DNA of 64,000 nt, from contig CDMY01000377.1 in NCBI GenBank assembly GCA_001179505.1, forward strand, positions 30,800-94,799. Reading direction: 5' to 3'. The notes beneath the pieces are model-generated. The model made no database searches. It saw only the letters and a list, made by a program, of their open reading frames with translations, and was not told where the DNA came from. Shown here in pieces: positions 29,800 through 64,000 of this stretch. Each line of letters opens with the position of its first letter. Within the stretch, counting starts at the first letter, position 1. Position numbers and translations under genes: made by a program. The stretch is from Vitrella brassicaformis CCMP3155 (taxonomy: Eukaryota > Protista > Chromerida).

Positions 29800-30673
29800 C
29801 TACATGATAACGCATCCATACTCGCTCTCCTCCCGCCACACCTTGTCCCCCAGCTGCCGCCCTAGTACTCTCATCACGGCATTGCGCGTGCGGTCGTGGG
29901 GGGCAGACTCCGTCGTGTACACATTGACACGACGTTCATCTCCCCAATCCGCCAGCTGAATCCCAGCCGTGTGCCCCTCACCGACCGCCTCACTGCCCAA
30001 CACCACCAGCCGCAAATGCCATCGATCCTTATACTTTTTGTCGAACACGGCCATACCCTTCCCCCACTGTGCCGCATCGCTGGGAGGGGCCGCCAGCAAT
30101 TGATACACTCGCCGGAATGCAGCAGAAGCAGGACACCGAGACGACCAGTCTCTGGAGAAGGTGAGGTAGCCGCCGTCACTAAGCCAATTAAAGACGCTGA
30201 ACGCCACCATAGAAGCGTAAGTGCGGTAGACCCAGCGCACACACAGACCGTCCAGCTGTGTGGGCGGGTCGGCATGGTTCAGCTGTGTGGGCGGGTCGGC
30301 AGGGTTGAATGTGTCGTGAGGGAAGAGGGGGCTGGGTGCGTCGAGGAGGGTGGGGGGGCGCCAGCGATGAAGGCCATAGCCCCAGCCATAGCCCCAGCCA
30401 TGAAGCCATTGCTGGCCTCTACGGTGGAGAGTCAGCCCCCGGCTGAGTATCTTCCATTGGCGGACCGCCTCGGTCTCGCCGATGAAGCCCCGGCCCGTCT
30501 GGCTGCCGAACACCTCGAAATGCTCATCGCCCAGCACCACTGGCCACTTGCCGCATATGTGATAGAGCAGCTCCAAATGAGGCCGCCACCTCGAGAAATC
30601 GCGGCCATACTCCAGCATCATTAGCCGTCGTGTGATGGCCACAACAACGGCCGCGTCCTGGCTCAGCTGAGGG
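29800..30673 (-). CDS. Family B, 3' portion (5' part lies beyond the gap, probably at 32107-32449)
   Basis: Open frame PQLSQDAAVV...MLEYGRDFSRWRPHLELLY...LGRQLGDKVWREESEYGCVIM*. Confidence 0.8.
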
Positions 30674-30973
30674 NNNNNNNNNNNNNNNNNNNNNNNNNNN
30701 NNNNNNNNNNNNNNNNNNNNNNNNNNNNNNNNNNNNNNNNNNNNNNNNNNNNNNNNNNNNNNNNNNNNNNNNNNNNNNNNNNNNNNNNNNNNNNNNNNNN
30801 NNNNNNNNNNNNNNNNNNNNNNNNNNNNNNNNNNNNNNNNNNNNNNNNNNNNNNNNNNNNNNNNNNNNNNNNNNNNNNNNNNNNNNNNNNNNNNNNNNNN
30901 NNNNNNNNNNNNNNNNNNNNNNNNNNNNNNNNNNNNNNNNNNNNNNNNNNNNNNNNNNNNNNNNNNNNNNNNN

Positions 30974-31113
30974 GGCATCACCAATGTATGCATGCTGGCG
31001 CTTTCGTCGCTCGGCTCACCGTGAATAAGGCCTTCAGCCATCGCCACGGGTTTAACATGCCGACGTCTTGATCGGGTCAGAACCGCCTGTGAGTCGCAGT
31101 TCTGCCACACACG

Positions 31114-31149
<36 letters not shown>

Positions 31150-31806
31150 TCACATTTCCCTGTCATCCTCCATGCCCTCGGTCCTTCTTGTTCTCCCTTT
31201 GCACCTCAATACGTCCAGATCACTGCAGCCAGAGCGATGATGCCGACATCTGTGCCGATTGATATCATCACAGCGCGTCTTTGTGTATGTCACACAGACC
31301 CACCATCGCCATGTTGCACCGGAGAAGAGGGGGGGAAAAGGGCTGAAGGGGAAGAATTGGGCCAAGCTCGCAGGCCGATCCGGGCGAGCATGCCTTGGTC
31401 CGCATTTGCAACTCATGGAGGGTGAGATGAGTGTAGTTCGCTTTCACGTGCTGACTGAGTCGTGGTGATTGATGGCGTCTTCGTTGCCCGACGAGCTGTG
31501 GCGAGGCCGGGTGGTGAGGTGCCTGCAGCTGCCTGATGTGATATTTCTCCGCAAAACCTCCCGCGCCATCGGCACGTCCATTATCACGGCCGCTCTGCTA
31601 GTGGAGCGCATCGACGGCTCCCTCGCCCGCCACTCACTCACCGGCCTCATCGACATCGACCGCACTGCCCCTCTCCCATTCAGCTACGTGCTGCGGGCGG
31701 CCTATGTGCTGGAGCAGGGCAACGACGAGTGGCCTGGGATGGGGCGGCTCATCCGGCTGGCCGCCATCTATCGGCTGACACCTGTCAATGGGCTGCCCCT
31801 GGTGCT
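30974..31806. repeat. Gap-bounded near-identical copy of 32384-33225 (B 5' end, spacer, A1 5' end)
   Basis: Differs from 32384-33225 only by scattered SNPs and microsatellite length. Contains the B ATG at 31041 (-) and the A1 ATG at 31472 (+). Flanked on both sides by 300-N gaps. Confidence 0.85.
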
Positions 31807-32106
31807 NNNNNNNNNNNNNNNNNNNNNNNNNNNNNNNNNNNNNNNNNNNNNNNNNNNNNNNNNNNNNNNNNNNNNNNNNNNNNNNNNNNNNNNNNNNNNN
31901 NNNNNNNNNNNNNNNNNNNNNNNNNNNNNNNNNNNNNNNNNNNNNNNNNNNNNNNNNNNNNNNNNNNNNNNNNNNNNNNNNNNNNNNNNNNNNNNNNNNN
32001 NNNNNNNNNNNNNNNNNNNNNNNNNNNNNNNNNNNNNNNNNNNNNNNNNNNNNNNNNNNNNNNNNNNNNNNNNNNNNNNNNNNNNNNNNNNNNNNNNNNN
32101 NNNNNN

Positions 32107-32449
32107 TCCACCACGCTGCCGAAGCTGCCTTCCACGACAACGGGCAGCAGTCGTGTGAGGATGGGCAGCAGGATGCAGGGTTGAACTGTGTGGGGTGGGC
32201 GTCGATGAGGGCCTCCAGCTGCGAATAGCTCTTGACGTACTCGGCGATGATGACCGCTGCCTCCTCAGGCACATTAGCGGCACTGACGGCTGGTTCCACC
32301 ATAGAAGGGACACTAGCTGATGCCTCAGAGCTGGCGCCTCCGTCACGCGCAGCCAATGTCTGCAACCCCCGCCGACCGACAGGCATCACGAATGTATGCA
32401 TGCTGGCGCTTTCGTCGCTCGGCTCACCGTGAATAAGGCCTTCAGCCAT
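32107..32449 (-). pseudogene. Family B 5' portion with a 1-nt deletion
   Basis: MAEGLIHGEPSDES...VPEEAAVIIAEYVKSYSQLEALIDAHPTQF, then -1 at ~32175 relative to the 51.7-kb copy. This could be a sequencing error. Confidence 0.65.
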
Positions 32450-32889
32450 CGCCACGGGTTTAACATGCCGACGTCTTGATCGGGTCAGAACCGCCTGTGA
32501 GTCGCAGTTCTGCCACACACGCACACACACACACACACACACACAAAGAGAGAGAGAGAGAGAGAGATCACATTTCCCTGTCATCCTCCATGCCCTCGGT
32601 CCTTCTTGTTCTCCCTTTGCACCTCAATACGTCCAGATCACTGCAGCCAGAGCGATGATGCCGACATCTGTGCCGATTGATATCATCACAGCGCGTCTTT
32701 GTGTATGTCACACAGACCCACCATCGCCATGTTGCACCGGAGAAGAGGGGGGGGAAAGGGCTGAAGGGGAAGAATTGCGCCAAGCTCGCAGGCCGATCCG
32801 GGCGAGCATGCCTTGGTCCGCATTTGCAACTCATGGAGGGTGAGATGAGTGTAGTTCGCTTTCACGTGCTGACTGAGTCGTGGTGATTG

Positions 32890-33930
32890 ATGGCGTCTTC
32901 GTTGCCCGACGAGCTGTGGCGAGGCCGGGTGGTGAGGTGCCTGCAGCTGCCTGATGTGATATTTCTCCGCAAAACCTCCCGCGCCATCGGCACGTCCATT
33001 ATCACGGCCGCTCTGCTAGTGGAGCGCATCGACGGCTCCCTCGCCCGCCACTCACTCACCGGCCTCATCGACATCGACCGCACTGCCCCTCTCCCATTCA
33101 GCTACGTGCTGCGGGCGGCCTATGTGCTGGAGCAGGGCAACGACGAGTGGCCTGTGATGGGGCGGCTCATCCGGCTGGCCGCCATCCATCGGCTGACACC
33201 TGTCAATGGGCTGCCCCTGGTGCTGTCGGCTCAGTGGCTGACAGCCCACCTTCCCAGCAGGACGGCATTCCACCAGCTGCCACTGGCGATGGCAATCTAT
33301 TGGCTGTTCGGCCACCTGCTGACACACAACACACACAGCCTGGCGCTGCAGCAGACCAGCATTCAGTATCGGATCGGCGATGAGTCGTTTCGTGTGGTGC
33401 CGTTGAGTGAGCTGCCGGGCGGCCATCCCTATGTCGACGGCTACAAGCGGACCGACCCCGCCATAAGCTGGACCGGCGATCTCTGCCCCTCCTTCTCGAC
33501 ATTCCTGATGCGAACGCTGCTCGGCAGGGCCTACGCGTGGGCTGGAGAGGGAGTGAACGATAAGAGGGCGCTGTGTGCGGTCATCGGCCATTATGACCCT
33601 CGCTATGGCCGTCTGATGAGGACCGACGACATCACCGAGGATCTGGGCATCGCTGTCGACTATCGCTTTAACCGGGGCGATCTGAATGCTGCTAATCCGA
33701 GAGAAGAAGGTTATGTGGTAGTCAGAGGCTTCCGGCCGGGCGAGACCGTCGCTGCCTGTCTCTGGATGGGGTCGGGCACTATCGTACTGCGGACGATCGA
33801 GCCATCCGCTGCTGATGCGCCTGCATCACTCGCCCACCGCTTCCCCATTTCGGAGCCCCTGTGGCGCCGTCTGCTGCAGCGATTCGTCCTGGACACCGAC
33901 GTAATCGACAAGTGGATGGTGAGGGGGTGA
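32890..33930 (+). CDS. Family A1 protein, intact and intronless
   Basis: ORF MASSLPDELWRGRVVRCLQLPDVIFLRKTSRA...DVIDKWMVRG*. Confidence 0.85.
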   Translation: MASSLPDELWRGRVVRCLQLPDVIFLRKTSRAIGTSIITAALLVERIDGSLARHSLTGLIDIDRTAPLPFSYVLRAAYVLEQGNDEWPVMGRLIRLAAIHRLTPVNGLPLVLSAQWLTAHLPSRTAFHQLPLAMAIYWLFGHLLTHNTHSLALQQTSIQYRIGDESFRVVPLSELPGGHPYVDGYKRTDPAISWTGDLCPSFSTFLMRTLLGRAYAWAGEGVNDKRALCAVIGHYDPRYGRLMRTDDITEDLGIAVDYRFNRGDLNAANPREEGYVVVRGFRPGETVAACLWMGSGTIVLRTIEPSAADAPASLAHRFPISEPLWRRLLQRFVLDTDVIDKWMVRG

Positions 33931-34300
33931 GTGTGGTGCTGGCTGGCGATTTGTGTTGTGTAGCCGTATGCTGGCCGGGCACTGTGTGAGGAGTGGAGGG
34001 GGGCGGAGTGCCTTTAAATGGCTGACGTGACTGAGAATGAATGGGTGAAGGTCGCGATTGCTTTTTTGTCAGACTCAGTGACTGTATGTGGCATAGCTTT
34101 TGTCAATGACTTAATGGCTTGACACAAGTCGCTTCGTTTCACCAGCCATACAAGCATCAGCCTCCACGAAACAGTCACACAGCCTCCACATGAAACAGTG
34201 TTCATAGAAGAAGGTCTGCACATCACATCAGCACGGACTCACCACACACAGTGTTAGTTCACACACTCCATACAGCCCATTCGCAACGTGCAGTTAACGG
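33931..34300 (+). other. Conserved non-coding 3' flank of family A genes
   Basis: TTTAAATGGCTGACGTGACTGAGAATGAAT...GTCGCTTCGTTTC. Homologous blocks at 23396-23640 (+), 49370-49560 (-) and 63727-64000 (-), partial at ~37790-37840 and 53190-53280. Confidence 0.8.
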
Positions 34301-34463
34301 ATCACACTCAGCAGCAGGCAGACAGAGGAAACACATGTTGTCTGTCTATCCCTCTGTCCCCCTCCTGTATCCTATTTAAAACGACAGTCGACACACACAC
34401 ACATAAGCTGGTGGCGAAGCCGCTCAGGACACCATGATCCACCCCATCTGTCCTGCCCCCTAT

Positions 34464-35909
34464 TCACCTCTGCTGCTCCTTCCGCCACACCATGCCCCCC
34501 AAGTGATCCCCCAACACACTCATCACGGCACTGTGCGTGCTGGTATAGGGTATACGCGGGGAGTCGGTCGACCAGATGGAAACATAGCCGCCCTGGTCGT
34601 GAGCGACCGTGGGCTCGTTCGTGAAGATATCCACATGCACTGAATGAAGCCCCGAATCCGTCAGCCGGACAAGTGCCATGAGCCCCTCGCCCATCACCTC
34701 ACTCCCCAGCACCACCAGCCGCTCATGCCATGGCCTCACCCACACCTGCCACTTCCTGTCGAACACGGCCGCCCCCGCCCCCCACTGTGCCGCATCGCTG
34801 GGAGGGGCCGCGAGCAGCTCACACACACGCCGAGATGCAGGAGAATCCCGACAGTAAGACGACAGGCTTCTGATTAAAGTGATACGGCTGTGCTCGCCGT
34901 AACGAAGCCAGTCGATCAGAACGAATGCCACCACCGATGTGTAGTTGGCGTACACGTTGCCTTCGAAGAAGGTGGGCGGGTCGGCGGCGTCCAATGTGTC
35001 CTGAGGGAAGAGGCGGCTGGGTGCGGCGAGGAGGGCGGGGGGGCCATAGCTCCAGCCATGAAGGCCATTGTTGCCGTACATCAGCTGTCTTTGCTGGCCT
35101 CTATGGTGGACAGTGATCGCTCCACTGAGTATTCTCCATTGGCGGACCGCCTCGGTCTCGCCGATGAAGGCCTCCCGGCTGCCGAACGCGTCGAAATGCT
35201 CATCGCCCAGCACCACTGGCCGCTTGCCGCGTATGTGATAGAGCATCTCCAAATGAGGCCGCCACCTCGCCCAATCGCCGCCACGCTCCAGCATCCTCAG
35301 TCGGCGGCTCAGCTGCTCGATGGCGACTGCCATGCGGCAGCCGTGGCTGAGTGCTGCCGGGAGCGGCAGGCGGGGGATTACCCTCATCAGGAATGAGCCG
35401 AGGCCAGCAATGGGCAGCAGCACACCCAATACACGCAGAAGGAGGGGCAGGAGAAATCGGCTGAGGGCGTTGCGATGACTGGGGGCCACTGCAGCAGCCA
35501 CGTCCAGGGCCAGCTGAGGAATGGGCATCTCCACCAGAGCACCGAAGCTGCTTTCCACCACGACGGGCAGCAGTCGGATAAGAATGGGCAGCAGGAGGGC
35601 GGAGGTGCGGAGGGTGGGATGGGCGTCGATGAGGGCCTCCAGCTGCGAATAGCTCCTGACGTGCTCGGCAACCGTCGGCACTGCCTCCTCAGGTACGTCA
35701 GCGGCACTGAGAAGGCGATCATGCTGCTGCTGCTGCTGGTTCGCACACGACGCGTTGCTGGCACCTGAAGCACGAGACACACACACACGCACAAGCCTAT
35801 GTGTCTGCGTGAGTCTCCCTTTTGCAGCGTCACCCTTACCGGAAGCAGCTGAGGCAGCGGATGATGCTTTGCTAGATGTGAGAGGGCCGTCACGAGCAGC
35901 AGTCGACAT
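34464..35909 (-). CDS. Family B protein, apparently intact (possibly one short 5' intron)
   Basis: ATG at 35909 directly after a CAG acceptor (MSTAARDG). Open frame through VPEEAVPTVAEHVRSYSQLEALIDAHP, LERGGDWARWRPHLEMLYHIRGKRPVVLG and LGDHLGGMVWRKEQQR*. Confidence 0.85.
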   Translation of the reverse strand: MSTAARDGPLTSSKASSAASAASGKGDAAKGRLTQTHRLVRVCVSRASGASNASCANQQQQQHDRLLSAADVPEEAVPTVAEHVRSYSQLEALIDAHPTLRTSALLLPILIRLLPVVVESSFGALVEMPIPQLALDVAAAVAPSHRNALSRFLLPLLLRVLGVLLPIAGLGSFLMRVIPRLPLPAALSHGCRMAVAIEQLSRRLRMLERGGDWARWRPHLEMLYHIRGKRPVVLGDEHFDAFGSREAFIGETEAVRQWRILSGAITVHHRGQQRQLMYGNNGLHGWSYGPPALLAAPSRLFPQDTLDAADPPTFFEGNVYANYTSVVAFVLIDWLRYGEHSRITLIRSLSSYCRDSPASRRVCELLAAPPSDAAQWGAGAAVFDRKWQVWVRPWHERLVVLGSEVMGEGLMALVRLTDSGLHSVHVDIFTNEPTVAHDQGGYVSIWSTDSPRIPYTSTHSAVMSVLGDHLGGMVWRKEQQR

Positions 35910-36060
35910 CTGTAAGACACACACAGCACACAACGGAGACCACTCACTGTTTGATTGGGCTCTCTTCCCTCCCTCCCTGCCCACACCTTTAGGACTGATT
36001 CTTCCAGCCTTGTGAGGCACAGATCTGCCACATTGTCAACCACACAGCAACCACACGCAC

Positions 36061-36389
36061 TGTCATCGCTGGTTCCTTCGCGCCCCTCCTGCTGGATCCT
36101 CGCACCTCAATTCGTCAGATCAGCGTCGGCCACAGAGAGCAGATGACGACATCTGAATGGATCGATATCATCAGAAGGTCTTTGATCATCTCAGACACTT
36201 CCCAGCGCCCAAAGCTCGCGAACCGACCGCCCCCCCCGATGGCGAGTCTGAAAGCGTGAGCTGTGAAACCACTCAGCAAAGGTGAGAGGACAGTCAGAGA
36301 GGCCGGGAAAGCATCGAAATGCTTCGTGTATTCAATGTTTTCTGCAGATCACTCACGTCACGCCTCGCTGAGACCTCAGGACATTCACG
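36061..36389. promoter_or_regulatory. Putative bidirectional promoter between divergent B and A genes (uninterrupted form)
   Basis: Lies in the 480-bp intergenic between divergent ATGs. Shares the core (C/A)AAGCTCGC...(G/A)(G/A)GGTGAGA with spacers at 31361-31429, 32780-32847 and 51065-51133, and with the split copy at 54500-54530/61752-61770. Function is inferred. Confidence 0.55.
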
Positions 36390-37505
36390 ATGCAGCCCAC
36401 TGGTGCAGCCCACTCCTCGTCCCGTCCGCCCAGCCCTGCCCTCTTCCAGCCCGCCGACCTCTTTGACCTGTCATTGCCCATCAGCAAGATGGCCGCCATG
36501 GCCATGGCGACTGACGGTGCCAAACGAGCCGCTCTCCGCTCGCAGATCGTCACCCGCACTCGGCAACAGGAGCTGCTGGGCCACACTGCGGAGACCGTCA
36601 ACAGCACCCTGCTCAACGCCGTCCAGCAGCACATCGACAAGGCCATCAGTCGTCTCGGCCTGGCGGACGTGTTGTCCTTCGACATTGGCGGTGATTCGGA
36701 GGCCGGCTTGAAGGTGGTCTACGTGCTGGAGCGGGGCACTGGCGAGGAGTGGCGGGCGATGGGGCGGTTCCTTCGGATGGCATTCATCTACCGGCTGACC
36801 CCCAATGCGACGCGTCCTCTTCGTCTGTCGGCCGCCATATTGCCCACAGCCTTTAACTTCCATCAGCTGCCACTCACCGTGGCCATCTACAAGATTATCG
36901 GACACCAGCTCAGAAACAGAGGGACCAGCCTGGTGCTGCAGCAAACCGGCAACGGACACTATCGGATTGGCAATGAGTCGTTTCGTGTGGTGCCGTTGGG
37001 TGAGCTGCCTGGCGGCCACCGCTATGCTGAGGGCTACAAGCGGACTGATCCCGCCATCCGCTGCAGCGTCAGGCTCTACCGCTCATTCTCGACACGTCTG
37101 CTGTACACGCTGCGCGTCAGCTGGTCGATTGGAGAGGGGGTGGTTGATAGGAGGGTGCTCTTCGCACACATCGGCCGTGACGACCCTCGCTATCGCCGAC
37201 TGGTGACCGAGGGCATTACAGACGATTTGGGCATCGCTGTCGACTGGCGCAATGATGGGGACGATCTGAATGCTGCTGATGCGACAGACGATCGTCGCGT
37301 GATTGTGAGCGGTTTCCGACTCAACGACACCATCGCTGCCCATCTGTGGGTGGGGAATGGCTACATCCACCTGTGGACGACTGAGGCACCTGCTGCCAAT
37401 CGGGCTCATCCGCCCGCCGACCGCGATCCCGTTTCGGTTGGTTCCGCCCGCTATGTACTGCGGCGATTCGGTCTCGAGAGTGACGTCATCGACAGGGGAG
37501 GGTAA
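36390..37505 (+). CDS. Family A subtype A2 (helical N-terminus instead of the F-box-like motif), intact and intronless
   Basis: 371-aa ORF MQPTGAAHSSS...VYVLERGTGEEWRAMGRFLRMAFIYRLTP...FRVVPLGELPGGHRYAEGYKRTDP...FGLESDVIDRGG*. Confidence 0.85.
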   Translation: MQPTGAAHSSSRPPSPALFQPADLFDLSLPISKMAAMAMATDGAKRAALRSQIVTRTRQQELLGHTAETVNSTLLNAVQQHIDKAISRLGLADVLSFDIGGDSEAGLKVVYVLERGTGEEWRAMGRFLRMAFIYRLTPNATRPLRLSAAILPTAFNFHQLPLTVAIYKIIGHQLRNRGTSLVLQQTGNGHYRIGNESFRVVPLGELPGGHRYAEGYKRTDPAIRCSVRLYRSFSTRLLYTLRVSWSIGEGVVDRRVLFAHIGRDDPRYRRLVTEGITDDLGIAVDWRNDGDDLNAADATDDRRVIVSGFRLNDTIAAHLWVGNGYIHLWTTEAPAANRAHPPADRDPVSVGSARYVLRRFGLESDVIDRGG

Positions 37506-37641
37506 TAGGGTGAGGAGTGCCGGCTGGCTGAGATTACTGTCGTTATGTCGTTGTGAGCGGCTGGCGAGCTTCTGAGACCGCCGCTGTCTGCCTCAAGTCT
37601 GCCTGTGGGTCGCGTTCGGCGATATCCACCTGCTTACGACC

Positions 37642-37770
37642 GTGAAAGGTACTGCTCGTCGGGTTCTGTCGCTTGCCCACCGATTCCGCATTTCGGAGCC
37701 CTTGTGGTGCCGTCTGCTGCGGCGGTACGATCTGGAGACCGACGTCCTTGATAGGGGACGGTGGTTGAAT
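37642..37770 (+). pseudogene. Family A C-terminal remnant
   Basis: SLAHRFRISEPLWCRLLRRYDLETDVLDRG, followed by the A-type 3' flank. Confidence 0.75.
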
Positions 37771-38598
37771 GAGTGTTGCTGGCCGGCGACGGGTGGTGTT
37801 GCTGTATGCTGGACGGGCAGTGTGTTAGTAGTGGAGGGGGACAGGGGAACAGGCTTTGATTGGGGGGGGGGNNNNNNNNNNNNNNNNNNNNNNNNNNNNN
37901 NNNNNNNNNNNNNNNNNNNNNNNNNNNNNNNNNNNNNNNNNNNNNNNNNNNNNNNNNNNNNNNNNNNNNNNNNNNNNNNNNNNNNNNNNNNNNNNNNNNN
38001 NNNNNNNNNNNNNNNNNNNNNNNNNNNNNNNNNNNNNNNNNNNNNNNNNNNNNNNNNNNNNNNNNNNNNNNNNNNNNNNNNNNNNNNNNNNNNNNNNNNN
38101 NNNNNNNNNNNNNNNNNNNNNNNNNNNNNNNNNNNNNNNNNNNNNNNNNNNNNNNNNNNNNNNNNNNNNNNTGGGGGGGGGGGTGAGTGGTGCTGGATTG
38201 AAACGTCATGTATTGGTTGCGTACAAGGAATACGTGTGTGTGCGATGTGTGCGATGAGTGACTTATTGACGTGAATCTTCTATCGATTGATAAGATGTCA
38301 GCAGCATCCATCCCATTATATTATGGACGCACACTCAATGACGCCCGAATCGGCACGCACACGACTTGAGCATCACAAGTCAGGTACGCACCGACATAGC
38401 CACCGTCGCACGAGCCCTTTTCATGCCGTCATCGCAAGCAAGACATCAAAGCATCAACGAATTGATCGGCGATGTCACATGGGCAAGCATTGGCCGACGT
38501 CAAACAAGCACACCGGCGCCTGTATACGAACAGGTGTCTTCACAGCTCAAGGGGAAGAAGCAAGACGCAAAAAAGAAGGCCATACAATGTCAACGCAG

Positions 38599-39230
38599 TC
38601 ACCCGCTCTTCGGTGTGAGGGCGATGTAAGCAGCCCACATCAGCAAGCCGATCTTCGCCGTCTCCGTCACAGCCACCACCCTGTGTGCCGTCTTGAGCCA
38701 CGGCACCTTCTGCTTGTCCACCGGCTCGCCCCTCTCCTCGCACCCAATCACATAGTCGCCCCCTTTCAGCAGACACGGCACCGGGAACACGTGGCTGTGG
38801 AACAGCGAGACCGCCAGAGCACCCATCAGCGGCAGATTCAGTCCTCTCCCGTCGTCCGTATTGTGGCCGGACAGCACTCGCCGCGCCTCGAGCATGGCTT
38901 GGACAGCCGCCAGAGAGGTCTCCACCCGCCTGTAGCTTCTGAATAGATGCGTGCCGACGCGAAGCAGCTTGGAGCGGGGCACTTCGGGGGTCGAGAACTT
39001 GACGCCGGCGTCATGGATGATGCCGAGGGACATGCCGGCCCAGATGAGCGATATGTAGCCATCAGCCGACATGGGATCTGACGCACACACGGTCACAGAC
39101 AGAAGCCACATTCAGACACACGCTCTACATACGTTGTCAACAGTGAATGCGTTTTGTCTGTAAGCTGTACCTGAGCACCCTGAAGCTGCGTGAAGAGGAC
39201 GGATTCACCCAGCGTTGACGCCCAAATAGA
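38599..39230 (-). CDS. Hypothetical protein
   Basis: ORF segment DPMSADGYISLIWAGMSLGIIHDAGVKFSTPEV...PVPCLLKGGDYVIGCEERG. Protein-like, no family recognised. Confidence 0.45.
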
Positions 39231-39847
39231 GACCAGGCAGGACAGTCAGATGGCGTGCACGCACAACACGGAATCTAATATATTGCACGCGATGATGGGG
39301 ATGATCTCAATGAGAGAGGAGGAGATTGGCTCATGGTAGGAGAAGTTCATCGAGCGTTCCTCTTTTCAAGCTCGCAACCGATCCGGAGTCGCGCCGCCTT
39401 TCTTTCATTGATTTTTGCTACCGAGGAGCTGAGTGGCTGCAACAAGACGACCCATGGACATATACATGTCCATCTCTTCAATGCATCGCGCGGTGTATCT
39501 CAGGCATGATGTGTCTCAACCATCGGTCTGGTGGTTCTGTCTATCCCATCACTCGTGGCGCTCCCTTCCCTCCGTCCGTCACTTTCTCCCCCGCCCATCC
39601 CATGAATGAATCAACACAAGGCGTCAGCGTTATGGATATGCACACAATGCAACACCAGCCAGCAGCCAGGCACCCAACCCCGACAGACGGCCGTAGTGTA
39701 CACGACAGACAGACAGACAGACAGACAAGACAGACATCCACACAGCACACACGAGTCAGTCATTCTCAGTCAGATTCTGCACGCATGGATGCCCCCCCTC
39801 CCTCCCTCCCTCCCTCTATCATCTGTGATTCAATGGTTGGTGTTAGG

Positions 39848-42800: not shown

Positions 42801-42949
42801 GGATACTTCCTGAGCAGCGACTTGACCTCCATGACCCGGTGGAAGTCCCAACGGTGCTCGCTGTACGTCATGCCAAAGACGCCATCGTCATTGGAGCCAG
42901 CTGGACAGACAGCACAGGGAGGAAAGGAGTTGAGGGCTTATTGTTCAGA

Positions 42950-42980
<31 letters not shown>

Positions 42981-45437: not shown

Positions 45438-46385
45438 TCAATGACCTACCCAGTAACCAGCACCCGTCCCCCTGTATGTCCTGTCGATGACGTCACTCGC
45501 GAGATTGAACCGCCGCAGCACGATATGGCCAGCGACGGACCACGGTCTCGCCAGGCCGGAAGCCGCGCACACCATCACACGACGACGGTCCATCGCATCG
45601 GTATCATCCAGATCGCCGTGGTCGCAGCGCGAGTCGACAGTGATGCCCAAATTCTCTAATGCCCTCGGTCACCGATCGGCGACAGCGAGGATCGTCACGG
45701 CCGACATTTGCAGTGAGCACTGTCCTGAGAGCACTGTCTTGTCGCGCACCACGCCCAGAGGAGCCTTTGCAGCAGGAATGTCGAGAATGAGCGGTGGAGA
45801 TAGCCGCAGCGGATGGCGGGGTCGGTCCTCTTGTAGCCCTCAGCATAGGGATGGCCGCCCGGCAGCTCACCCAACGGCACCACACGAAAGGTCATGTTGC
45901 CAATCCGATACTGTCCGTTGCCGGCTTGCTGCAGCGCCAGGCTGCGTGTGTTGTGTGAACAGGTGGCCGAACAGCCGATAGATTGCCATGGCCAATGGCA
46001 GCTGGTGGAATGCCGTCCTGCTGGGCAGGTGGGCTGTCAGCCACTGAGCCGACAGCACCAGGGGCAGCCCATTGGCAGGCGTCAGCCGATAGATGGCGGC
46101 CAGCCGGATGAGCCGTCCCATCCCAGGCCACTCGTCGCTGCCCTGCTCCAGCACATAGGCCGCCCGCAGCACATAGGTGAATGGGAGAGGGGCGGTGCGG
46201 TCGATGTCGATGAGGCCGGTGAGTGGGTGGCGGGCGAGGGAGCCGTCGATGCGCTCCACCAGCAGAGCGGCGGTCACCATAGGCGCCTTCGCCCGGCAGG
46301 TCCCTCGGACACAGACCGCCTCATGGACGAGAAGGGACGGGATAATGCGCCGGTGCCACAGGTCGTCGGGCACCGAATCAGACAT
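45438..46385 (-). pseudogene. Family A1 pseudogene
   Basis: MSDSVPDDLWHRRIIPSLL start. -2 frameshift at ~45950, further frameshifts at ~45750 and ~45650, and an internal deletion in the C-terminal region. Confidence 0.85.
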
Positions 46386-49561: not shown

Positions 49562-50662
49562 TCACCCCACCACCCTCCCCCTGTCGATGACGTCACTCTC
49601 GAGACCGAATCGCCGCAGCACACGGCGGCACAGGGGCTCCGAAATGGGGAAGCGGTGGGCGAGCGGATGAGACCGATCCGCACCAGGTGCCTCGGTCGTC
49701 CGCAGCATGATAATGTCATACCCGATCCAGAGGCCAGTCGTACTGACCGACACCTGCAGATGGGCAGCGACGGTCTCGCCCGGCCGGAAGCCGCTCACAA
49801 TCACATAACGCCGGTCAGTCGCACCAGCATTCAGATGGCCCCCATCACAGCGGTAGTCGACAGCGATGCCCTGATCCTCTGTGATGGCATCGGTCCCTCG
49901 CAGTCGGTCATAGCGACGGTCGATGAGTTGATGCACCACCTTCCTGTGACTCACCCCCTCTCCACCCGACCACCAGGAGAGCAGCCTGGCCATCAGGTAT
50001 GCCGAGAATGAGCGGGAAAACAATGCACCCCAGCGGATGACGGGGTCGGTCCGCTTGTAGCCCTCAGCATAGCGATGGCCGCTCGGCAGCTCATCCAACG
50101 GCACCACACGAAACGACTCATTGCCAATCCGATAGGCCCCGTTGTCGGCATGCTGCAGCGCCAGGCTGTGTGTGTGGTGTGTGAGCAGGTGGCCGATTAT
50201 CTTGTAGATGGCCATGGCGAGTGGCAGCTGGTGGAAGGCCGCTGCTGTGGGCAGCGAGTCGGCCGACAGCTGAAGGGGCCGCGTCGCATTTGCAGGGGTC
50301 AGCCGGTAGATGAAGGCCATCCGAAGGAACCGCCCCATTGCCCGCCACTCCTCGCCACTACCCCGCTCCAGCACGTAGACCACCTTCAAGCCGGCCCCCA
50401 CATCACCGCCAATGTCGAAGGCCAACACGTCGGCCAGCCCGAGACGACTGATGGCCTTGTCGATGTGCTGCTCGACGAGCATTAGGATCTCGGCCACTTC
50501 GCCGGCATTGCTGCCATTGATCTGTAAGTGGAGTGCGGCGCGTCTGTTGGGGTCAGCGGACATGGCCATGTCGGCGGCCTTGCTGATGGCTGCGCTGCGC
50601 AGCGGGGGGACTGCCACCAGAGGGGCGGTGGGGGGCCGGCCGTTGGCAGGCCGGGACGACAT
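49562..50662 (-). CDS. Family A2 protein, intact and intronless
   Basis: ORF from MSSRPANGRPP to FGLESDVIDRGRVVG*. Confidence 0.85.
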   Translation of the reverse strand: MSSRPANGRPPTAPLVAVPPLRSAAISKAADMAMSADPNRRAALHLQINGSNAGEVAEILMLVEQHIDKAISRLGLADVLAFDIGGDVGAGLKVVYVLERGSGEEWRAMGRFLRMAFIYRLTPANATRPLQLSADSLPTAAAFHQLPLAMAIYKIIGHLLTHHTHSLALQHADNGAYRIGNESFRVVPLDELPSGHRYAEGYKRTDPVIRWGALFSRSFSAYLMARLLSWWSGGEGVSHRKVVHQLIDRRYDRLRGTDAITEDQGIAVDYRCDGGHLNAGATDRRYVIVSGFRPGETVAAHLQVSVSTTGLWIGYDIIMLRTTEAPGADRSHPLAHRFPISEPLCRRVLRRFGLESDVIDRGRVVG

Positions 50663-51345
50663 CGCTACCAGGGAGTGGTCTGGATGGAGAGGCACACACA
50701 TGGGAATCAGACCAAGTGAATTAGACGGCGGGATGCTCACCGTCAAAGCTGGGCGAGATGGCAGCAATCGTCACGAACCGCGGTGACTCTGCAGACACAC
50801 AGCAGCACACACATCTGGGGCGGACGCACGCAGCGCCATGATCACCGCACAGCCTCACCGATGTCACTCAGTCACGAGAGCCGTGCGATGGCGAGGCCCT
50901 CACAGAATCGCAGACAAAGCGATGTAATGAGTTCGTTATGCGGAAGTCGTCACCGTGGCAGTAGGGCGAGGCGGGACGTGCTTGAGATCTGCAGGCGGCC
51001 ACCAGACACGAAGCAGTAGCCATTATCTGAAGCTTCTTTTGGCTTCTTCTGCCTCTCTGGCTGCCATCTCACCCTCCAGTGAGCTGCAAAGGCTCCAAAT
51101 GCTCCAGAGGCGCCGATCGGTCTGCGAGCTTGGCGCAATTCTTCCCCTTCAGCCCTTTTCCCCCCCTCTTCTCCGGTGCAACATGGCGATGGTGGGTCTG
51201 TGTGACATACACAAAGACGCGCTGTGATGATATCAATCGGCACAGATGTCGGCATCATCGCTCTGGCTGCAGTGATCTGGACGTATTGAGGTGCAAAGGG
51301 AGAACAAGAAGGACCGAAGGCATGGAGGATGACAGGGAAATGTGA

Positions 51346-51381
<36 letters not shown>

Positions 51382-51453
51382 CGTGTGTGGCAGAACTGCG
51401 ACTCACAGGCGGTTCTGACCCGATCAAGACGTCGGCATGTTAAACCCGTGGCG

Positions 51454-52976
51454 ATGGCTGAAGGCCTTATTCACGGTGAGCCGAGCGACGAAAGCGCCAG
51501 CATGCATACATTCGTGATGCCTGTCGGTCGGCGGGGGTTGCAGACATTGGCTGCGCGTGACGGAGGCGCCAGCTCTGAGGCATCAGCTAATGTCCCTTCT
51601 ATGGTGGAACCAGCCGTCAGTGCCGCTGACGTGCCGCAAGATGTCGCACTCACCATCGCCGAGTACGTTAGGAGCTACTCGCAGCTGGAGGCCCTCATCG
51701 ACGCCCACCCCACCCAATTCACCTCCGCCCTCCTGCTACCCATCCTCACACGACTGCTGCCCGTTGTCGTGGAAGGCAGCTTCGGCAGCGTGGTGGATGT
51801 GCCCGTCCCTCAGCTGAGCCAGGACGCGGCCGTTGTTGTGGCCATCACACGACGGCTAATGATGCTGGAGTATGGCCGCGATTTGTCGAGGTGGCGGCCT
51901 CATTTGGAGCTGCTCTATCACATACGCGGCAAGCGGCCAGTGGTGCTGGGCGATGAGCACTTCAGCGCGTTTGACAGCCGGGCGGCCTTCATCGGCGAGA
52001 CCGAGGCGGTCCGCCAGTGGAAAATACTCAGCCGAGGCGTGACTGTTCGTTGTATGTCGTATCGCTGTTGTCGGCACCAACAGATGAGGCTGATGGACGG
52101 CAATGCTATTCGCCTTCATCGCTGTGGCTATCGCCTCCCCGCCCTCCTCACCTCTGCCAGCCCCCTCTTCCCTCACGACACATTCGTCGACGCCGCCGAC
52201 CCGCCCACACAGCTGGACGGCTACGTCTACGCACTTACGCTTCTATGGTGGCGTTCATCGTCTTCAGATGGCTTTGGTATGGCGGCTACATCAGTTTCTC
52301 CGGAGGCTCAGCGTGGGGCTCTGACTGTCCTTCTCGTTCTGCCGCATCTCTACGTATGGGTGAGCTGCTGGCGGCCCCCCTCAGCGGTGAGGCACAGTGG
52401 GGGGNNNNNNNNNNNNNNNNNNNNNNNNNNNNNNNNNNNNNNNNNNNNNNNNNNNNNNNNNNNNNNNNNNNNNNNNNNNNNNNNNNNNNNNNNNNNNNNN
52501 NNNNNNNNNNNNNNNNNNNNNNNNNNNNNNNNNNNNNNNNNNNNNNNNNNNNNNNNNNNNNNNNNNNNNNNNNNNNNNNNNNNNNNNNNNNNNNNNNNNN
52601 NNNNNNNNNNNNNNNNNNNNNNNNNNNNNNNNNNNNNNNNNNNNNNNNNNNNNNNNNNNNNNNNNNNNNNNNNNNNNNNNNNNNNNNNNNNNNNNNNNNN
52701 NNNNAGGGGGGGGGGGGGGGGGCGGCCGTGTTCGACAGGCGTGTGGAGGTACACCATGAGCGGCTGGTGGTCTTGGGCGGTGAGCTGATGGGCGAGGGCG
52801 ACATGGTACTCATTCGGCTGGAGGATTGGGGAGATAAGTGCCATGTCGATGTCCACAAGACCTGGTCTCTTCCCTTCGACCGCGCGCGCACTGCCGTGAA
52901 GGGTATGCTGGGGGAGCATCTGGGGGGCGCGGTGTGGGGGGAGGGAAGTGGGTCGATCGGATGCATTGTGATGTAG
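51454..52976 (+). pseudogene. Family B copy with a -1 frameshift (spans gap 52405-52704); pseudogene or sequencing error
   Basis: Frame changes at ~52228 (GTCTACGCACTTAC vs expected GTCTACCGCACTTAC). Both frames carry B motifs. Ends LGEHLGGAVW...GCIVM*. Confidence 0.7.
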
Positions 52977-53280
52977 GCCTTGAGGGAGGGGGGCATGGCA
53001 CAGGCAGACGGACAGGCTGAGCGTCTTATGCAGTTTTGTGACTGGCGTCAGTGAATGTTTGTCTACTGTCTTTCCGTCATGTCTCCACGCACACTCGATC
53101 GCATATGCCGAACTTCAAGAGGAATTACTTACTGTACTGTACTGGCCAGTGTGACGGGAATGGAACCCATGTCTCTCGACAGCTCACAAGTCCACTTATC
53201 AATACTCCACCCCCCTCTACTCCTCACACACTGCCCCGCCAGCATACGGAAACACAACACAAATCGCCAACCAGCACCCC

Positions 53281-54405
53281 TCACCCTATTACCCTCCCCC
53301 TGTCGATGACGTCGGTCTCGAGCTCGAAGTGCCGCAGCACACGGCGCCACAGGGGGATGGACTTCGGAAAGCGCTGAGCGACCGGCTGGGACCGATCGGC
53401 AGCAGGTGCTTCGGTCGTCCGCAGCACGATATTGCCGTACCCAACCCACACGTGGGCAGCGACGGTCTCGTTGAGTCGGAATCCGCTGACTATCACATAG
53501 CGATAGTCCGTCAAAATCGCAGCATTCAGATCGCCCTGGTCAGTGCGATAGCCGATAGCGATGCTCAAATCCTCACCGATGTCGTCGGTCAGCAGACGGC
53601 CATAGCGAGGGTCATCATGGCCGATGGGTGCAGTCAGCACCGTATTGTCGCCCAGCCCCTCTTCATCCGACCATTGGGAGAGCAGTGTGCGCAAAGGGAA
53701 TGCTGAGAATGAGGGGAAGAGGAAGGCGTGCCGGCGGATGACGGGGTCGGTCCGCTTGTAGCCCTCAGCATAGCGGTGGCTGCCCGGCAGCTCACCCAAC
53801 GGCACCACACGAAACCACTGATCGCCGATCCGATAGTGTGCGCTGCCGATCTGCTGCAGCGCCAGGCTGTGTGTGTGGTGTATGAGCTGCTGTCCGATGA
53901 TCTTGTAGATGGCCATGGCGAGTGGCAGCTGGTGGAAGGCCGTGGCTGTGGGCAGTCAGTCGGCCGACAGACGAAGAGGACGCGTCGCATCAGCAGGGGT
54001 CAGCCGGTAGATGAAGGCCATCCGAAGAAACCGCCCCATCGCCCGCCACTCCTCGCCACTGCCCCGCTCCAGCAGATAGATCACCTTCAAGCCGGCCTCC
54101 GAATCACCGCCAATGTCAAAGGCCAACACGTCCGCCAGCCCAAGTTGACGGAGGGCTTTGTGGATGTGCTGCTGGACGGCGTTGAGCAGGGTGCTGTTGA
54201 CGGTCTCCGCAGTGTGGCCCAGCAGCTCCTGTTGCCGAGTGCGGGTGGCGATCTGCGAGCGGAGAGCGGCTCGTTTGGCATCGTCAGTCGCCATGGCCAT
54301 GGCGGCCATCTTGCTGATGGGCAATGACAGGTCAAAGAGGTCGGCGGGCTGGAAGAGGGCAGGGCTGGGGGGACGGGACGAGAGCGCCGCACCAGTGGGT
54401 TGCAT
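53281..54405 (-). pseudogene. Family A2 copy with a single in-frame TGA
   Basis: GAC TGA CTG CCC at 53956-53958, where the 49.6-kb copy has GAC TCG CTG CCC. Frame otherwise open. The N-terminus is nearly identical to the 36390 copy. Confidence 0.85.
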
Positions 54406-54548
54406 CGGGAGTGTCCTGAGGTCTCAGGCGAGGGATGGTGCTGAGAGATCTGCAGCCACAGGACAGACACAAACAGCTCGTGAAGCGCTTTTGAGCTTCA
54501 TCTGCCTCTCTTCCGCCCCTTTACCTTCTCCTGGGGGCGAGCCCAAGA

Positions 54549-60500: not shown

Positions 60501-61718
60501 CCCCTCCCCACTCCGGTGACCTGCAAGACCACTCACAGACAGACAGACAGACAGGCAGACAGACAGACAGGCAGGCAGGCAGGGATGGATGCATGTGTGC
60601 GTGCGTGATACCTGCTGCCTGTTCCCTCATGCGCACGGTGGACATCAACAGGTGGTCTGCGTGGGAGAGATCGACACACAGGGAGTGTTTGATTGGTTGC
60701 TGTGTTTCCCGTGCTTTCCTTCCCTGACCATTTCCGTGGATTTCCTGTCATTTCCGGAGCAATGTCCCCTTATGCAGTCGAAGCCGGCCTAAAGGCCTTC
60801 TTGGCTCGCTTCGCTCGCCGCCTCCTCTCTCTTTCTGTTACGACCGAGGTCGCCTCGATACACTCACCCAGTCCTCCACCTGCATGCAGGCAGGGAAAAA
60901 GCCAGACAGACATACATACGATGGATGGATGGATGAATGTGTGTGTGTGTGTGTGTGTGGCTTTTGGTATCGCCCGAAAGGGGGTGAAGTCAACACGTGT
61001 GAAGGTCGTTCAGGTGTCGAATCGTGCCTTCTCTGCTAGTCAGGAATCGCTCTGCTAGGAGGGACCTTGGCCATGCGTGGCTGCAGTGATCGATGACCTG
61101 CAAGACCACTCACAGACAGACAGACAGNNNNNNNNNNNNNNNNNNNNNNNNNNNNNNNNNNNNNNNNNNNNNNNNNNNNNNNNNNNNNNNNNNNNNNNNN
61201 NNNNNNNNNNNNNNNNNNNNNNNNNNNNNNNNNNNNNNNNNNNNNNNNNNNNNNNNNNNNNNNNNNNNNNNNNNNNNNNNNNNNNNNNNNNNNNNNNNNN
61301 NNNNNNNNNNNNNNNNNNNNNNNNNNNNNNNNNNNNNNNNNNNNNNNNNNNNNNNNNNNNNNNNNNNNNNNNNNNNNNNNNNNNNNNNNNNNNNNNNNNN
61401 NNNNNNNNNNNNNNNNNNNNNNNNNNNCTTGGCCATGCGTGGCTGCAGTGATCGATGACCTGCAAGACCACTCACAGACAGACAGACAGACAGACAGACA
61501 GGCAGACAGACAGACAGGCAGGCAGGCAGGGATGGATGCATGTGTGCGTGCGTGATACCTGCTGCCTGTTCCCTCATGCGCACGGTGGACATCAACATGT
61601 GGTCTGCGTGGGAGAGATCGACACACAGGGAGTGTTTGATTGGTTGCTGTGTTTCCCGTGCTTTCCTTCCCTGACCATTTCCGTGGATTTCCTGTCATTT
61701 CCGGAGCAATGTCCCCTT
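54549..61718 (+). mobile_element. DNA transposon (DUF6729/Dada-like DDE transposase) inserted in an A/B spacer; ends approximate
   Basis: Flanks match the two halves of the uninterrupted spacer at 36061-36389 and 50960-51135. Contains a transposase-like CDS. There is a short inverted motif AAGGGGACA (54549-54557) / TGTCCCCTT (61710-61718; also 60763-60771). No target-site duplication was found. Confidence 0.75.
55132..60519 (+). CDS. Putative DDE transposase, 14 exons, roughly 1400 aa, reading frame intact
   Basis: Thirteen GT-AG introns checked by eye for phase. Zn-ribbon KCPWC...R.V...YCSTC...QLP; ILSQD (GAC 57690); CNEIGFV...EG; KPPIAVYKDTDCC (GAC 58030); LDIFH (58102-58113); GCLEDPP..LFY; LPIYSTARGTNKNES (GAG 59003). 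Confidence 0.8.
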
Positions 61719-61732
61719 ATGCAGTCGAAGCC
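60517..61732 (+). repeat. Direct duplication of the transposase 3' region (60517-60785 and 61456-61732)
   Basis: Both copies run from TGACCTGCAAGACC to TGTCCCCTTATGCAGTCGAAGCC. 61066-61127 also equals 61428-61489 across the N gap, probably an assembly overlap. Confidence 0.85.
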
Positions 61733-62043
61733 TCTTTGGAGTAGCGAGGACGATCCATCTGCGAGCTTGGCTTGCAGAGTCTTCCCTTTTTTCAAGGCGT
61801 TTGGCTGACAGCAGGGCGGCTTGGGGTGTCTGGGAGATGCCCAAAGACCTTCTGAGATGATATCGATCCATTCAGATGTCACCATCTGCTCTCTGTGGCC
61901 GACGCTGATCTGACGAATTGAGGTGCGAGGAGCCAGCAGGAGGGGCGCGAGGCAACCAACGATGACAGTGCGTGTGGTTGCTTTGTGGTTGTGGCAGCTC
62001 TGCAGTCAATCAAACAGTGAGTGGTCTCCGTCCGAGTCTACAG

Positions 62044-63533
62044 ATGTGGACTGCTGCTCGTGACGGCCCTCTCACATCAAGCAAAGCATCATCCGCTGCC
62101 TCAGCTGCTTCCGGTAAGGGTGACGCTGCAACAGGGAGACTCACGCAGACACATAGGCTTGTGCGTGTGTGTATCGTGCTTCAGGTGCCAGCAACGCGTC
62201 GTGTGCGAACCAACAGCAGCAGCAGCATGATCGCCTTCTCAGTGCCTCTGACGTGCCTGAGGAGGCAGCGGTCATCATCGCCGAGTACGTTAGGAGCTAT
62301 TCGCAGCTGGCGGCCCTCATCGACGCCCACCCCACCCTCCGCACCTCCGCCCTCCTGCTGCCCATTCTTATCCGACTGCTGCCCGCCGTGGTGGAGGGCA
62401 GCTTCGGTGCTCTGGTGGAGATGCCCATCCCTCAGCTGGCCCTGGACATGGCTGCTGCCACGGTGGCCCCCAGTCATCGCAACGCCCTCAGCCGATTTCT
62501 CCTGCCCATCCTTCTGCGTGTATTGGGCGTGCTGCTGCCCATTGCCGGCCTCGGCTCATTCCTGATGTGGGTCATCCCCCGGCTGCCGCTACCTGCAGCA
62601 CTCAGCCACGGCTGCCGCATGGCAGTCGCCATCGAGCAGCTGACACGCCGGCTGAAGATGCTGGAGCGTGGCGGCGATTGGGCGAGGTGGCGGCCCCATT
62701 TGGAGATGCTCTATCACATACGCGGCAAGCGGCCAGTGGTGCTGGGCGATGGGCATTTCGAGGTGTTCGGCAGCCAGACGGGCCGGGGCTTCATCGGCGA
62801 GACCGAGGCGGTCCGGCAATGGAAGATACTCAGCCGGGGCCTGACTGTCCACTATGAAGGCCAGTAAAGACAGCTGATGGACGGCGACAAGCTTCTTGAC
62901 TTGGGCTACTGTCTCCCCGCCCTCCTCGCCGCACCCAGCCCCCTTTTCCCTCACGACACATTCAACGCCGCCGACCCGCCCACAGAGCTGGGTTGCTGGA
63001 CGTACCGCACTTACGTGGGCAGCGTGCACGCCAACTACACGTCAATGGCGGCATTCGTCCTCTTCCACTGGCTTTACGAAACGTATCCAATCGACTTAAA
63101 GTATGCTAGATTCTGGTCGTCTCACGATCGTGATTCTGCTGCGTTCCGGCGAATGACTGATCTGATGGCGGCCCCTCCCAGCGATGCGGCACAGTGGGGG
63201 CCGGGGGTGGCGGTGTTCGACAGCAAAAGGCCGCCCCTCGGAAGAAAGTGGCCACCCCTCGGAAGGGTACAGCATAATCGGCTGGTGGTGCTGGGGAGTG
63301 AGGCGATGGGCGATGGGCTCATGGCACTCGTCCGGCTGACGGATTCGGGGCGTCACTCAGTGGATGTGGATATCTTCACGAACGAGCCAGCGGTCGTAGA
63401 CGACCAGGGTGGCTGTGTTTCCATCTGGACCGACTCCCCCCGTATACCCTATACCAGCACGCGCAGGGCCGTGATGAGTGTGTTGGGGGATCACTTGGGG
63501 GGCAAGGTGTGGCGGAAGGAGCAGGAGAGGTGA
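62044..63533 (+). pseudogene. Family B copy with a single in-frame TAA
   Basis: MWTAARDG start and a short intron (~62114-62183). HYEGQ*RQLM has TAA at 62865-62867 where the 35-kb paralog reads HHRGQQRQLM. Ends LGDHLGGKVWRKEQER*. Confidence 0.85.
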
Positions 63534-64000
63534 ATTGGGGGCAGGACAGATGGGGTGGATGATGGTGGGTGGGTGTCTGTGTGTCGATTGTCGTTTTAGT
63601 ACAGGATACAGGAGGGGGACAGACAGACAGACAGACAACAGGTTTCCCTCTGTCTGCCTGCTGGCTGAGTGTGTGGCGCCTTGATATGCGTCCCATTAAC
63701 TGCACGTTGCGAATGGGCTGTATGGAGTGTGTGAACTAACGCTGTGCGTGGTGACGCACGGCATAACTTGTGTCCGTGCGGATGTGATGTGCAGACCTTC
63801 TTCTATGAACACTGTTTCATGTGGAGGCTGTGTGACTGTTTCGTGGAGGCTCATGCTTGTATGGCTGGTGAAACGAAGCGACTTGTGTCAAGCCATTAAG
63901 TCATTGACAAAAGCGATGCCACATACAGTCACTGAGTCTGACAAAAAAGCAATCGCGACCTTCACCCATTCATTCTCAGTCACGTCAGCCATTTAAAGGC

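Follow-up and report, generated by a model that had tools for sequence, protein, structure and literature searches.

The 64,000-nucleotide stretch of the Vitrella brassicaformis CCMP3155 genome analyzed here (the window; positions 30800 to 94799 of contig CDMY01000377.1, hereafter C377) contains four copies of a two-gene cassette, in which a gene of family B and a gene of family A diverge from a short common spacer. This divergent B|A cassette is supported as a genome-wide, old, and reiterated unit, and its two genes are remote paralogs. The pattern is probably best explained by a superfamily of F-box-derived genes, including A and B, that has expanded through birth and death, with a bidirectional two-gene cassette as the element that is duplicated. 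The structural and evolutionary description of this superfamily is well supported. For its function we tentatively propose target binding in the manner of adaptors of SKP1-cullin-F-box (SCF) ligases, with A2-type and B proteins possibly devoid of SKP1 docking. Among photosynthetic organisms, chromerids are the closest to the apicomplexan parasites, and V. brassicaformis is thus related to the malaria parasites. To our knowledge, the lineage-specific gene families of chromerids are almost unexplored.

Divergent pairing of A and B genes

Copies of the two families were mapped with tblastn and with hidden Markov models (HMMs) made from alignments of families A and B, using the 72.7-Mb V. brassicaformis assembly of 1064 contigs. 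Four contigs, C350, C377, C683, and C868 (245 kb together), were scanned in their entirety, and further orientations were counted by hand from the genome-wide match lists on C240, C343, C509, C894, C649, C500, and C243. The superfamily is large, with at least 100 matches for A and at least 100 for B in the genome. On the four scanned contigs, A and B neighbors separated by no more than 1.3 kb include 14 head-to-head pairs, 10 tail-to-tail pairs, and no tandem pairs. Cassette 4 of the window represents a fifteenth head-to-head pair, which is interrupted by an insertion. The hand count adds 7 head-to-head and 4 tail-to-tail pairs, again with no tandem ones. The HMM mapping of orientation that had been recommended in a preliminary description of this stretch therefore shows that A and B are not placed at random.

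The same description regarded the divergent linkage as obligate, and it is in fact frequent but not obligate. A tally over the four scanned contigs shows that a divergent partner is missing for about 8 of the 29 A copies and 4 of the 18 B copies, many of these being fragments. Three A|A head-to-head pairs are found on C350, where the position of B is taken by an A1-type gene (two pairs) or by a second full-length A gene (one pair), and the same contig has one B|B head-to-head pair. The cassettes occur on at least 10 contigs and diverge by 22 to 47% in amino acid sequence, so they are not the by-product of a single recent segmental duplication, a possibility that had been raised at the outset.

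Protein searches with A and B return almost exclusively unnamed products of V. brassicaformis CCMP3155, MMETSP transcripts, and a few metagenome contigs. A profile search against 1.84 billion representatives gave 121 matches, and all 20 of those looked up are Vitrella entries or unnamed metagenome or MMETSP records. Judging from these searches, the A/B core of about 290 residues appears to have no sequence relatives outside Vitrella, and the superfamily would be confined to this genus. Metagenome contigs from ENA and JGI contain relatives at approximately 75 to 87% nucleotide identity; these contigs are short and include one tail-to-tail pair and one B gene with its upstream spacer. No telomere repeats are found on the four scanned contigs. 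Closely spaced head-to-head genes have been reported as over-represented in Vitrella and chromerid genomes (Woo et al. 2015, PMC4501334), and the A/B family is not described in that work. Literature searches found no description of the family, in agreement with the initial view that the pairing is undescribed.

Spacer element and transcription

Nine cassettes on four contigs have a common spacer core that is 90% conserved, while the flanking proteins differ by 22 to 47%. A 17-nucleotide motif, GATYGATRTCATCACAG, has 15 exact matches in the genome, all 15 on contigs that carry the family, compared to none for the reversed control. When up to one mismatch is allowed, 14 of the 15 matches on the four scanned contigs are located in divergent spacers and show constant polarity relative to B and A. 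Within the window, GATYGATRTCATCNCRG has 6 matches versus 0.3 expected, with one match per cassette spacer in an orientation that is fixed relative to B and A. The motif search places these four at positions 32675 to 32691 (plus strand) in cassette 1, 36160 to 36176 (plus strand, 2 mismatches) in cassette 2, 51222 to 51238 (minus strand) in cassette 3, and 61852 to 61868 (minus strand) in cassette 4, the last on the B side of the insertion. The remaining two matches are a copy at position 31257, within a misassembled block described below, and a match with 2 mismatches at position 49879, within an A2 coding sequence. The shared spacer core noted earlier in the sequence of the window is thus confirmed.

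Transcription was checked by comparing contigs from four public read runs (X1, X3, X5, and X7) with window positions 30501 to 36500. In the B gene of cassette 2, the segments 35763 to 35837 (75 nucleotides) and 35910 to 35986 (77 nucleotides) are skipped in contigs of X1 and X7, and the segment 36025 to 36105 (81 nucleotides) is skipped in X7 only. Each skip reads CT..AC on the plus strand, that is, GT..AG on the minus strand, and the sequence is unspliced in X3 and X5. Since introns are skipped in X1 and X7 and unspliced sequence is seen in X3 and X5, the former two behave as RNA; the latter are DNA-like runs. The B gene of cassette 2 thus gives rise to a spliced transcript, in line with the deposited model P0079. 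Its 5′ exon extends to at least approximately position 36136, and the ATG codon of the A2-type gene is at 36390, so that the shared control region of cassette 2, which includes the motif, is only about 265 bp long.

RNA-like contigs also cover positions 36301 to 36500, at the 5′ end of the A2-type gene, and bridge the joint 30673/32107 in the B gene of cassette 1. MMETSP transcripts are present for both A and B. Divergent transcripts less than 1 kb apart, the usual mark of a bidirectional pair, are seen for cassette 2 only, from the extents of the contigs. The spacer might function as a bidirectional promoter.

F-box ancestry and predicted structure

A profile-to-profile comparison of A and B with hhalign gives a probability of 66% and an E value of 5.6e-5 over 216 collinear columns, which begin at the LERGG-W block and end with the C-terminal TTE strand. 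On the basis of this collinear match, A and B are remote paralogs. With the F-box matches given below, they belong to a single F-box-derived superfamily and are not two unrelated partners.

The N termini of A1-type proteins and of more distant members contain the motif LPxELWRxRVL...L..LRxTSR. The A1-type N-terminal profile matches 11 independent Vitrella F-box segments in hhalign with a probability of 89.9% and an E value of 1.7e-6. Two tandem open reading frames (ORFs) on contig C859 (L030 and L031, C859:14669-18840) and one on C983 (L034) pass both Pfam F-box models at residues 26 to 68; the C859 ORFs score 29.1 bits with the F-box-like model (cutoff, 24.3) and 28.4 bits with the F-box model (cutoff, 20.5). 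L030 aligns with the A1-type profile at a probability of 99.2% (E value of 2.4e-19), its F-box being in register with the N terminus of the window A1 protein, and L031 and L034 match the same profile in HMMER searches. In these three proteins an A-like core comes after a Pfam-positive F-box, and they are the clearest link between the superfamily and F-box proteins. Several superfamily members are named F-box proteins in UniRef. The A1-type N-terminal match, the Pfam-positive relatives, and the in-register alignment of L030 together indicate that the superfamily is derived from F-box proteins. Between A2-type and A1-type N termini, the common part consists only of the post-F-box linker helix (E value of 1.7e-8). 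A gene for SKP1, split by introns, is present in the Vitrella genome.

A Pfam scan of 64 aligned members shows no meaningful family match, and the A and B profiles have no matches among PDB sequences at E values up to 10. The Pfam SMI1_KNR4/SUKH models match none of 74 members, and PF09346 has no match in the six-frame translated genome. The AlphaFold2 model of the A2-type protein of cassette 2 has a predicted local distance difference test (pLDDT) score of 87.7 and a predicted template modeling (TM) score of 0.85. The B model has a pLDDT of 68.1, with a good C-terminal half. Foldseek searches of PDB and BFVD with the A model retrieve nothing at E values up to 0.001, and the ESM Atlas shape search shows no clear match (TM scores of 0.31 or less); the Atlas feature searches with A2 and B give no usable match. 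Comparison of the models with the SUKH alpha/beta fold yields scores within the uninformative range of the tool. Prediction of a complex between A2 (residues 25 to 371) and B (residues 62 to 475) returns a score of 0.00, which is no verdict and carries no weight either way.

Some superfamily members have additional domains. The A2-type proteins P0013 and P0030, encoded on other Vitrella contigs, contain a CBM_25 starch-binding module (Pfam ID PF03423), which is inserted after the N-terminal region and ahead of the core. In P0212, a Cyclin_C domain is joined to an A-like core.

Turnover and exchange between cassettes

An uninterrupted frame is found in 13 of 27 near-full A copies and in 5 of 14 near-full B copies from the four scanned contigs, the B count being too low because of introns. 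The median pairwise ratio of nonsynonymous to synonymous substitution rates (dN/dS) is 0.71 for A and 0.63 for B. The corresponding ratio of the proportions of differences (pN/pS) is 0.24 to 0.5 in conserved blocks and close to or slightly above 1 in variable patches. Broken copies, mosaic identity, and these patches bear out the earlier suggestion of turnover and variable patches.

Cassettes 2 and 4 form a mosaic, with 59 to 99% identity per 100 bp, and the synonymous divergence of their A2-type genes is 0.115 in the N-terminal third and 0.50 in the C-terminal third. Such mosaic identity and uneven synonymous divergence indicate gene conversion or recombination, not uniform divergence. The distance matrices of the partners are weakly correlated (Mantel r of 0.24, p of 0.05), and their trees show some nearest-neighbor concordance (pairs 2/3 and 4/6). 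The spacer and the B 5′ end of cassette 1 are 94 to 98% identical to those of cassette 3, yet the A partners are of different types, which indicates that partners have been reshuffled among cassettes. In the comparison of A and B trees that had been advised, congruence is thus weak; this and the segments shared across A types speak against strictly co-evolving cognate pairs.

These observations can be arranged in the following scenario. The A and B proteins are ancient paralogs of F-box descent, each built from an F-box, or what is left of one, at the N terminus, a linker helix that is conserved, and a globular core of about 290 residues. An ancestral inverted duplication may have brought two copies into head-to-head orientation on either side of a short control region that they share, now approximately 0.3 to 0.9 kb between coding regions, with the conserved, oriented 17-nucleotide element. 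The two-gene unit would then have been copied in tandem, giving rise to the tail-to-tail chains, and also to numerous other sites. Its copies would have evolved by birth and death, with gene conversion or recombination reshuffling segments and partners and with relaxed or partly diversifying selection. Divergent transcription of both genes of the unit is likely to start in this common region. The proteins might be adaptors of SCF-type ubiquitin ligases, or derivatives without an F-box, whose variable core binds diverse targets.

Alternative explanations

If A and B formed a cognate interacting pair (sensor and helper, or toxin and antidote) with linkage held by selection, one would expect what is seen in several respects: a strongly preferred and old head-to-head arrangement with a conserved shared spacer element, a divergent partner for about 14 of the 18 B copies on the scanned contigs, variable patches in both proteins, and the partial nearest-neighbor concordance of the partner trees (pairs 2/3 and 4/6). 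We nevertheless regard this as unlikely. The two proteins are paralogs with the same core, unlike known toxin-antidote pairs, their co-phylogeny is weak (r of 0.24, p of 0.05), cassettes 1 and 3 share the spacer and the B 5′ end (94 to 98%) despite different A types, C350 has three A|A pairs and one B|B pair in place of A|B, and solo copies exist. Nor does the analogy with immune receptors and toxin-antidote systems, proposed when the cassettes were first noticed, find any counterpart in domain content, as no NLR, TIR, LRR, or toxin domain is found in the window proteins and the 64 members. A related proposal views the A|B cassettes as co-regulated F-box-derived pairs, in which one member keeps or loses the ligase-docking motif and the two act together in hypervariable recognition (of viruses, symbionts, or self versus non-self). 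Such cassettes would have arisen independently as a counterpart to paired immune receptors, with gene conversion among them as the source of diversity and a dedicated bidirectional promoter element as the driver; this proposal strikes us as quite improbable.

Hundreds of matches on dozens of contigs, many of them broken, could also reflect a selfish or mobile DNA unit, with the ORFs being its own genes and not those of the host. The A genes are intronless, the copies cluster on short, gap-rich contigs, and non-coding flanks are conserved, as between positions 34010 to 34241 and 63769 to 64000 (98% identity). This explanation is very improbable given that Pfam domains, be they of a transposase, an integrase, a reverse transcriptase, or any other kind, are absent from A and B, that no terminal repeats bound the unit, the arrays being simple tandem chains with tail-to-tail spacers of 0.3 to 1 kb, and that the B genes have spliced introns of the host type, the core blocks are under purifying selection, and the family is of bona fide F-box ancestry. 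As for the possibility that the pattern is an artifact, created in the assembly or by a single recent local segmental (inverted) duplication, the window does have six N gaps, along with one block that is proven to be mis-scaffolded, and inverted patches of its two arrays are 92 to 98% identical. However, independent runs reproduce the cassette sequence, the partner proteins differ by 22 to 47%, and the arrangement recurs on C350, C683, C868, C240, C343, C509, C894, C649, and ENA metagenome contigs at approximately 75 to 87% nucleotide identity, so that this explanation is largely refuted and retains a negligible probability.

Several points also weigh against the expansion of F-box-derived genes as a bidirectional unit. 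The A2-type and B proteins, which make up the bulk of the window cassettes, have no F-box profile match (E value of 0.62 for A2 and a marginal 0.048 for B). The window A1 protein is below the Pfam F-box thresholds, so that none of the window A1, A2, and B proteins matches the Pfam F-box families (PF00646 and PF12937), and an HMMER search of PDB with the N-terminal profile retrieves no F-box protein. SKP1 binding and target recognition by the A/B proteins are predictions from sequence. Co-expression of A and B refers to their presence in contigs, not to expression levels. Head-to-head pairs are common genome-wide (PMC4501334), and the arrangement may have been kept by descent, not by selection. 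Finally, dN/dS values of 0.6 to 0.7, taken with the large number of broken copies, are also compatible with a family that is for the most part in decay.

Cassettes and other features of the window

All four B/A cassettes that had been noted between positions 29.8 and 64 kb were recovered by HMM and tblastn mapping. Their distances from ATG to ATG, initially given as approximately 440 to 790 bp, are corrected to approximately 265 to 790 bp, depending on the gene model. The two opposed arrays chained tail-to-tail are also confirmed, but the alternation of A and B within them is not strict owing to two A fragments, a C-terminal pseudogene remnant at 37541 to 37761 (plus strand) and an A1-type fragment between the two arrays at 45567 to 46280 (minus strand), both detected with tblastn and HMMs. 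Inverted patches with 92 to 98% identity connect the two arrays, and the non-coding flank at 34010 to 34241 is 98% identical to that at 63769 to 64000. Window position 64000 is the end of contig C377 (94,799 bp).

Cassette 1 is probably intact. Its B gene, on the minus strand, is split into a 3′ part at 29800 to 30673 (HMM positions 115 to 394), which continues at 32107, and a 5′ part at 32107 to 32584 (HMM positions 33 to 112). The 5′ part has a local assembly frameshift near 32171 to 32192, where RNA-like contigs have a 1-nucleotide insertion. The A1-type gene at 32890 to 33930 (plus strand) is an intact ORF with an F-box-like N terminus (LPDELWR...). At 33433 to 33674, a stretch of 240 bp (80 codons) of this gene is missing from contigs of all four runs, including the DNA-like ones; its ends are non-canonical, and the short side of the joint has only 20 letters. 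This is not an intron and may be a paralog or structural variant.

Cassette 2 is intact. Its B gene occupies positions 34464 to approximately 36140 (minus strand), with an intact ORF that is transcribed, spliced, and in agreement with the annotated protein P0079, and its A2-type gene at 36390 to 37505 (plus strand) is an intact intronless ORF encoding 371 amino acids. In the region of the B 3′ untranslated region, an RNA-like X1 contig spanning 34103 to 34718 has a 17-nucleotide insertion at 34238, a strain or paralog variant. Contigs of X5 and X7 link the B gene of cassette 2 (35169) to that of cassette 1 (30501) with 13 foreign letters between them. These links are either assembly-graph chimeras of paralogs or real recombinant copies.

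In cassette 3, the A2-type gene at 49562 to 50767 (minus strand) has an uninterrupted frame, and the B gene at approximately 51454 to 52943 (plus strand) has a frameshift near 52221 to 52233 and an N gap at 52405 to 52704 in a poly-G run. Cassette 4 is dead, with stops in both genes and a 7.4-kb insertion in the spacer: the A2-type gene at 53284 to 54405 (minus strand) has an in-frame stop at 53956 to 53958, and the B gene at approximately 61972 to 63533 (plus strand) has at least two (about 62469 to 62474 and 62865 to 62867).

The breakpoints of the insertion map to 54456 and 61825, and it contains a multi-exon gene on the plus strand. It is single-copy at the DNA level, only its last approximately 600 bp recurring on C550 and C775, and it has no terminal inverted repeats. 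Its similarity to the Pfam family DUF6729 is below the cutoff (E value of 0.038), its Atlas feature score to DUF6729 and to clusters associated with KDZ transposases is 0.88, and a search of the genome with PF20499 gave no match. The identity of the insertion as a transposon, as it was described at first, is plausible but only weakly supported and unproven, given the weak signals, the single copy, and the lack of terminal inverted repeats.

Outside the four cassettes, the window contains a solo, frameshifted A copy at 14948 to 15768 (plus strand), an A1-type copy at 22460 to 23395 (plus strand) that is tail-to-tail with the next B gene, a B copy at 24278 to 25531 (minus strand) that is intact over HMM positions 7 to 394, and a B pseudogene fragment at 27664 to 28685 (plus strand; HMM positions 140 to 394), which contains the gap 28212 to 28511. 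The B copy at 24278 is part of a 1043-codon open frame (24278 to 27409, minus strand) that includes an upstream low-complexity stretch rich in Q, G, and P. This frame is probably a high-GC read-through or a separate gene rather than a real fusion.

Two of the six N gaps of the window, each of 300 N (30674 to 30973 and 31807 to 32106), surround an 833-bp block at 30974 to 31806. This block is a 97 to 99% copy of the cassette 1 spacer and an A 5′ fragment; the fragment, at 31583 to 31810, runs into the second gap. All four runs, two DNA-like and two RNA-like, join position 30673 to 32107 with 9 letters (ACGGGCACA), and positions 115 and 112 of the B HMM abut at these edges. The segment 30674 to 32106 is therefore a scaffolding artifact inside a single B gene. 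The gap 52405 to 52704 is within the conserved stretch QWGAGAAVFD, with HMM positions 313 and 312 abutting, the gap 61128 to 61427 has an identical 62-nucleotide overlap on both flanks, and the gap 37872 to 38171 is intergenic with poly-G flanks; the true length of these three is probably near zero. About 13 HMM positions are missing across the gap 28212 to 28511. The reading frame across the N gaps of the window is beyond proof from these data.

Significance and comparison with known systems

The A/B cassettes offer a tractable model for the amplification and homogenization of bidirectional gene pairs, and the 17-nucleotide motif is a candidate cis-element for studies of chromerid promoters. 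The superfamily represents a set of candidate variable ubiquitin-ligase adaptors with testable targets. The analysis also flags concrete assembly errors in a public scaffold.

The expansions of plant FBX and of nematode F-box/FTH and F-box/FBA2 proteins resemble the A/B superfamily in having an F-box-derived N terminus followed by a variable C-terminal domain, hundreds of copies per lineage in clustered arrays, a large share of pseudogenes, and variable patches together with raised dN/dS. Unlike these families, the Vitrella proteins have a C-terminal core without outside relatives, most window copies have lost a recognizable F-box, and the copies form divergent pairs of remote paralogs with a dedicated spacer motif. 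We know of no description of such a divergent paired arrangement as a feature of plant or nematode F-box families.

The combination of F-box and SUKH is a known substrate-receptor architecture, and a possible SUKH-like core is for this reason a lead of interest. F-box-SUKH proteins of the FBXO3/SKIP16 type (SUKH superfamily, PMC3113570) are among the closest known systems.

Paired plant NLRs (RRS1/RPS4 and RGA4/RGA5) are similar to the A/B cassettes in their divergent transcription, short shared intergenic region, related members, and membership in fast-evolving families. In contrast to them, A and B contain no NB-ARC, TIR, or LRR domains, their partners are apparently reshuffled, and their copy number is far higher. 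The generic bidirectional-promoter pairs of chromerids (PMC4501334) are likewise closely spaced head-to-head genes, comparable to the approximately 265 bp that separate B exon 1 from the A2 start. However, the A/B pairs differ from these in consisting of two paralogs, in being the unit of a family-wide amplification, and in having a family-specific 17-nucleotide element.

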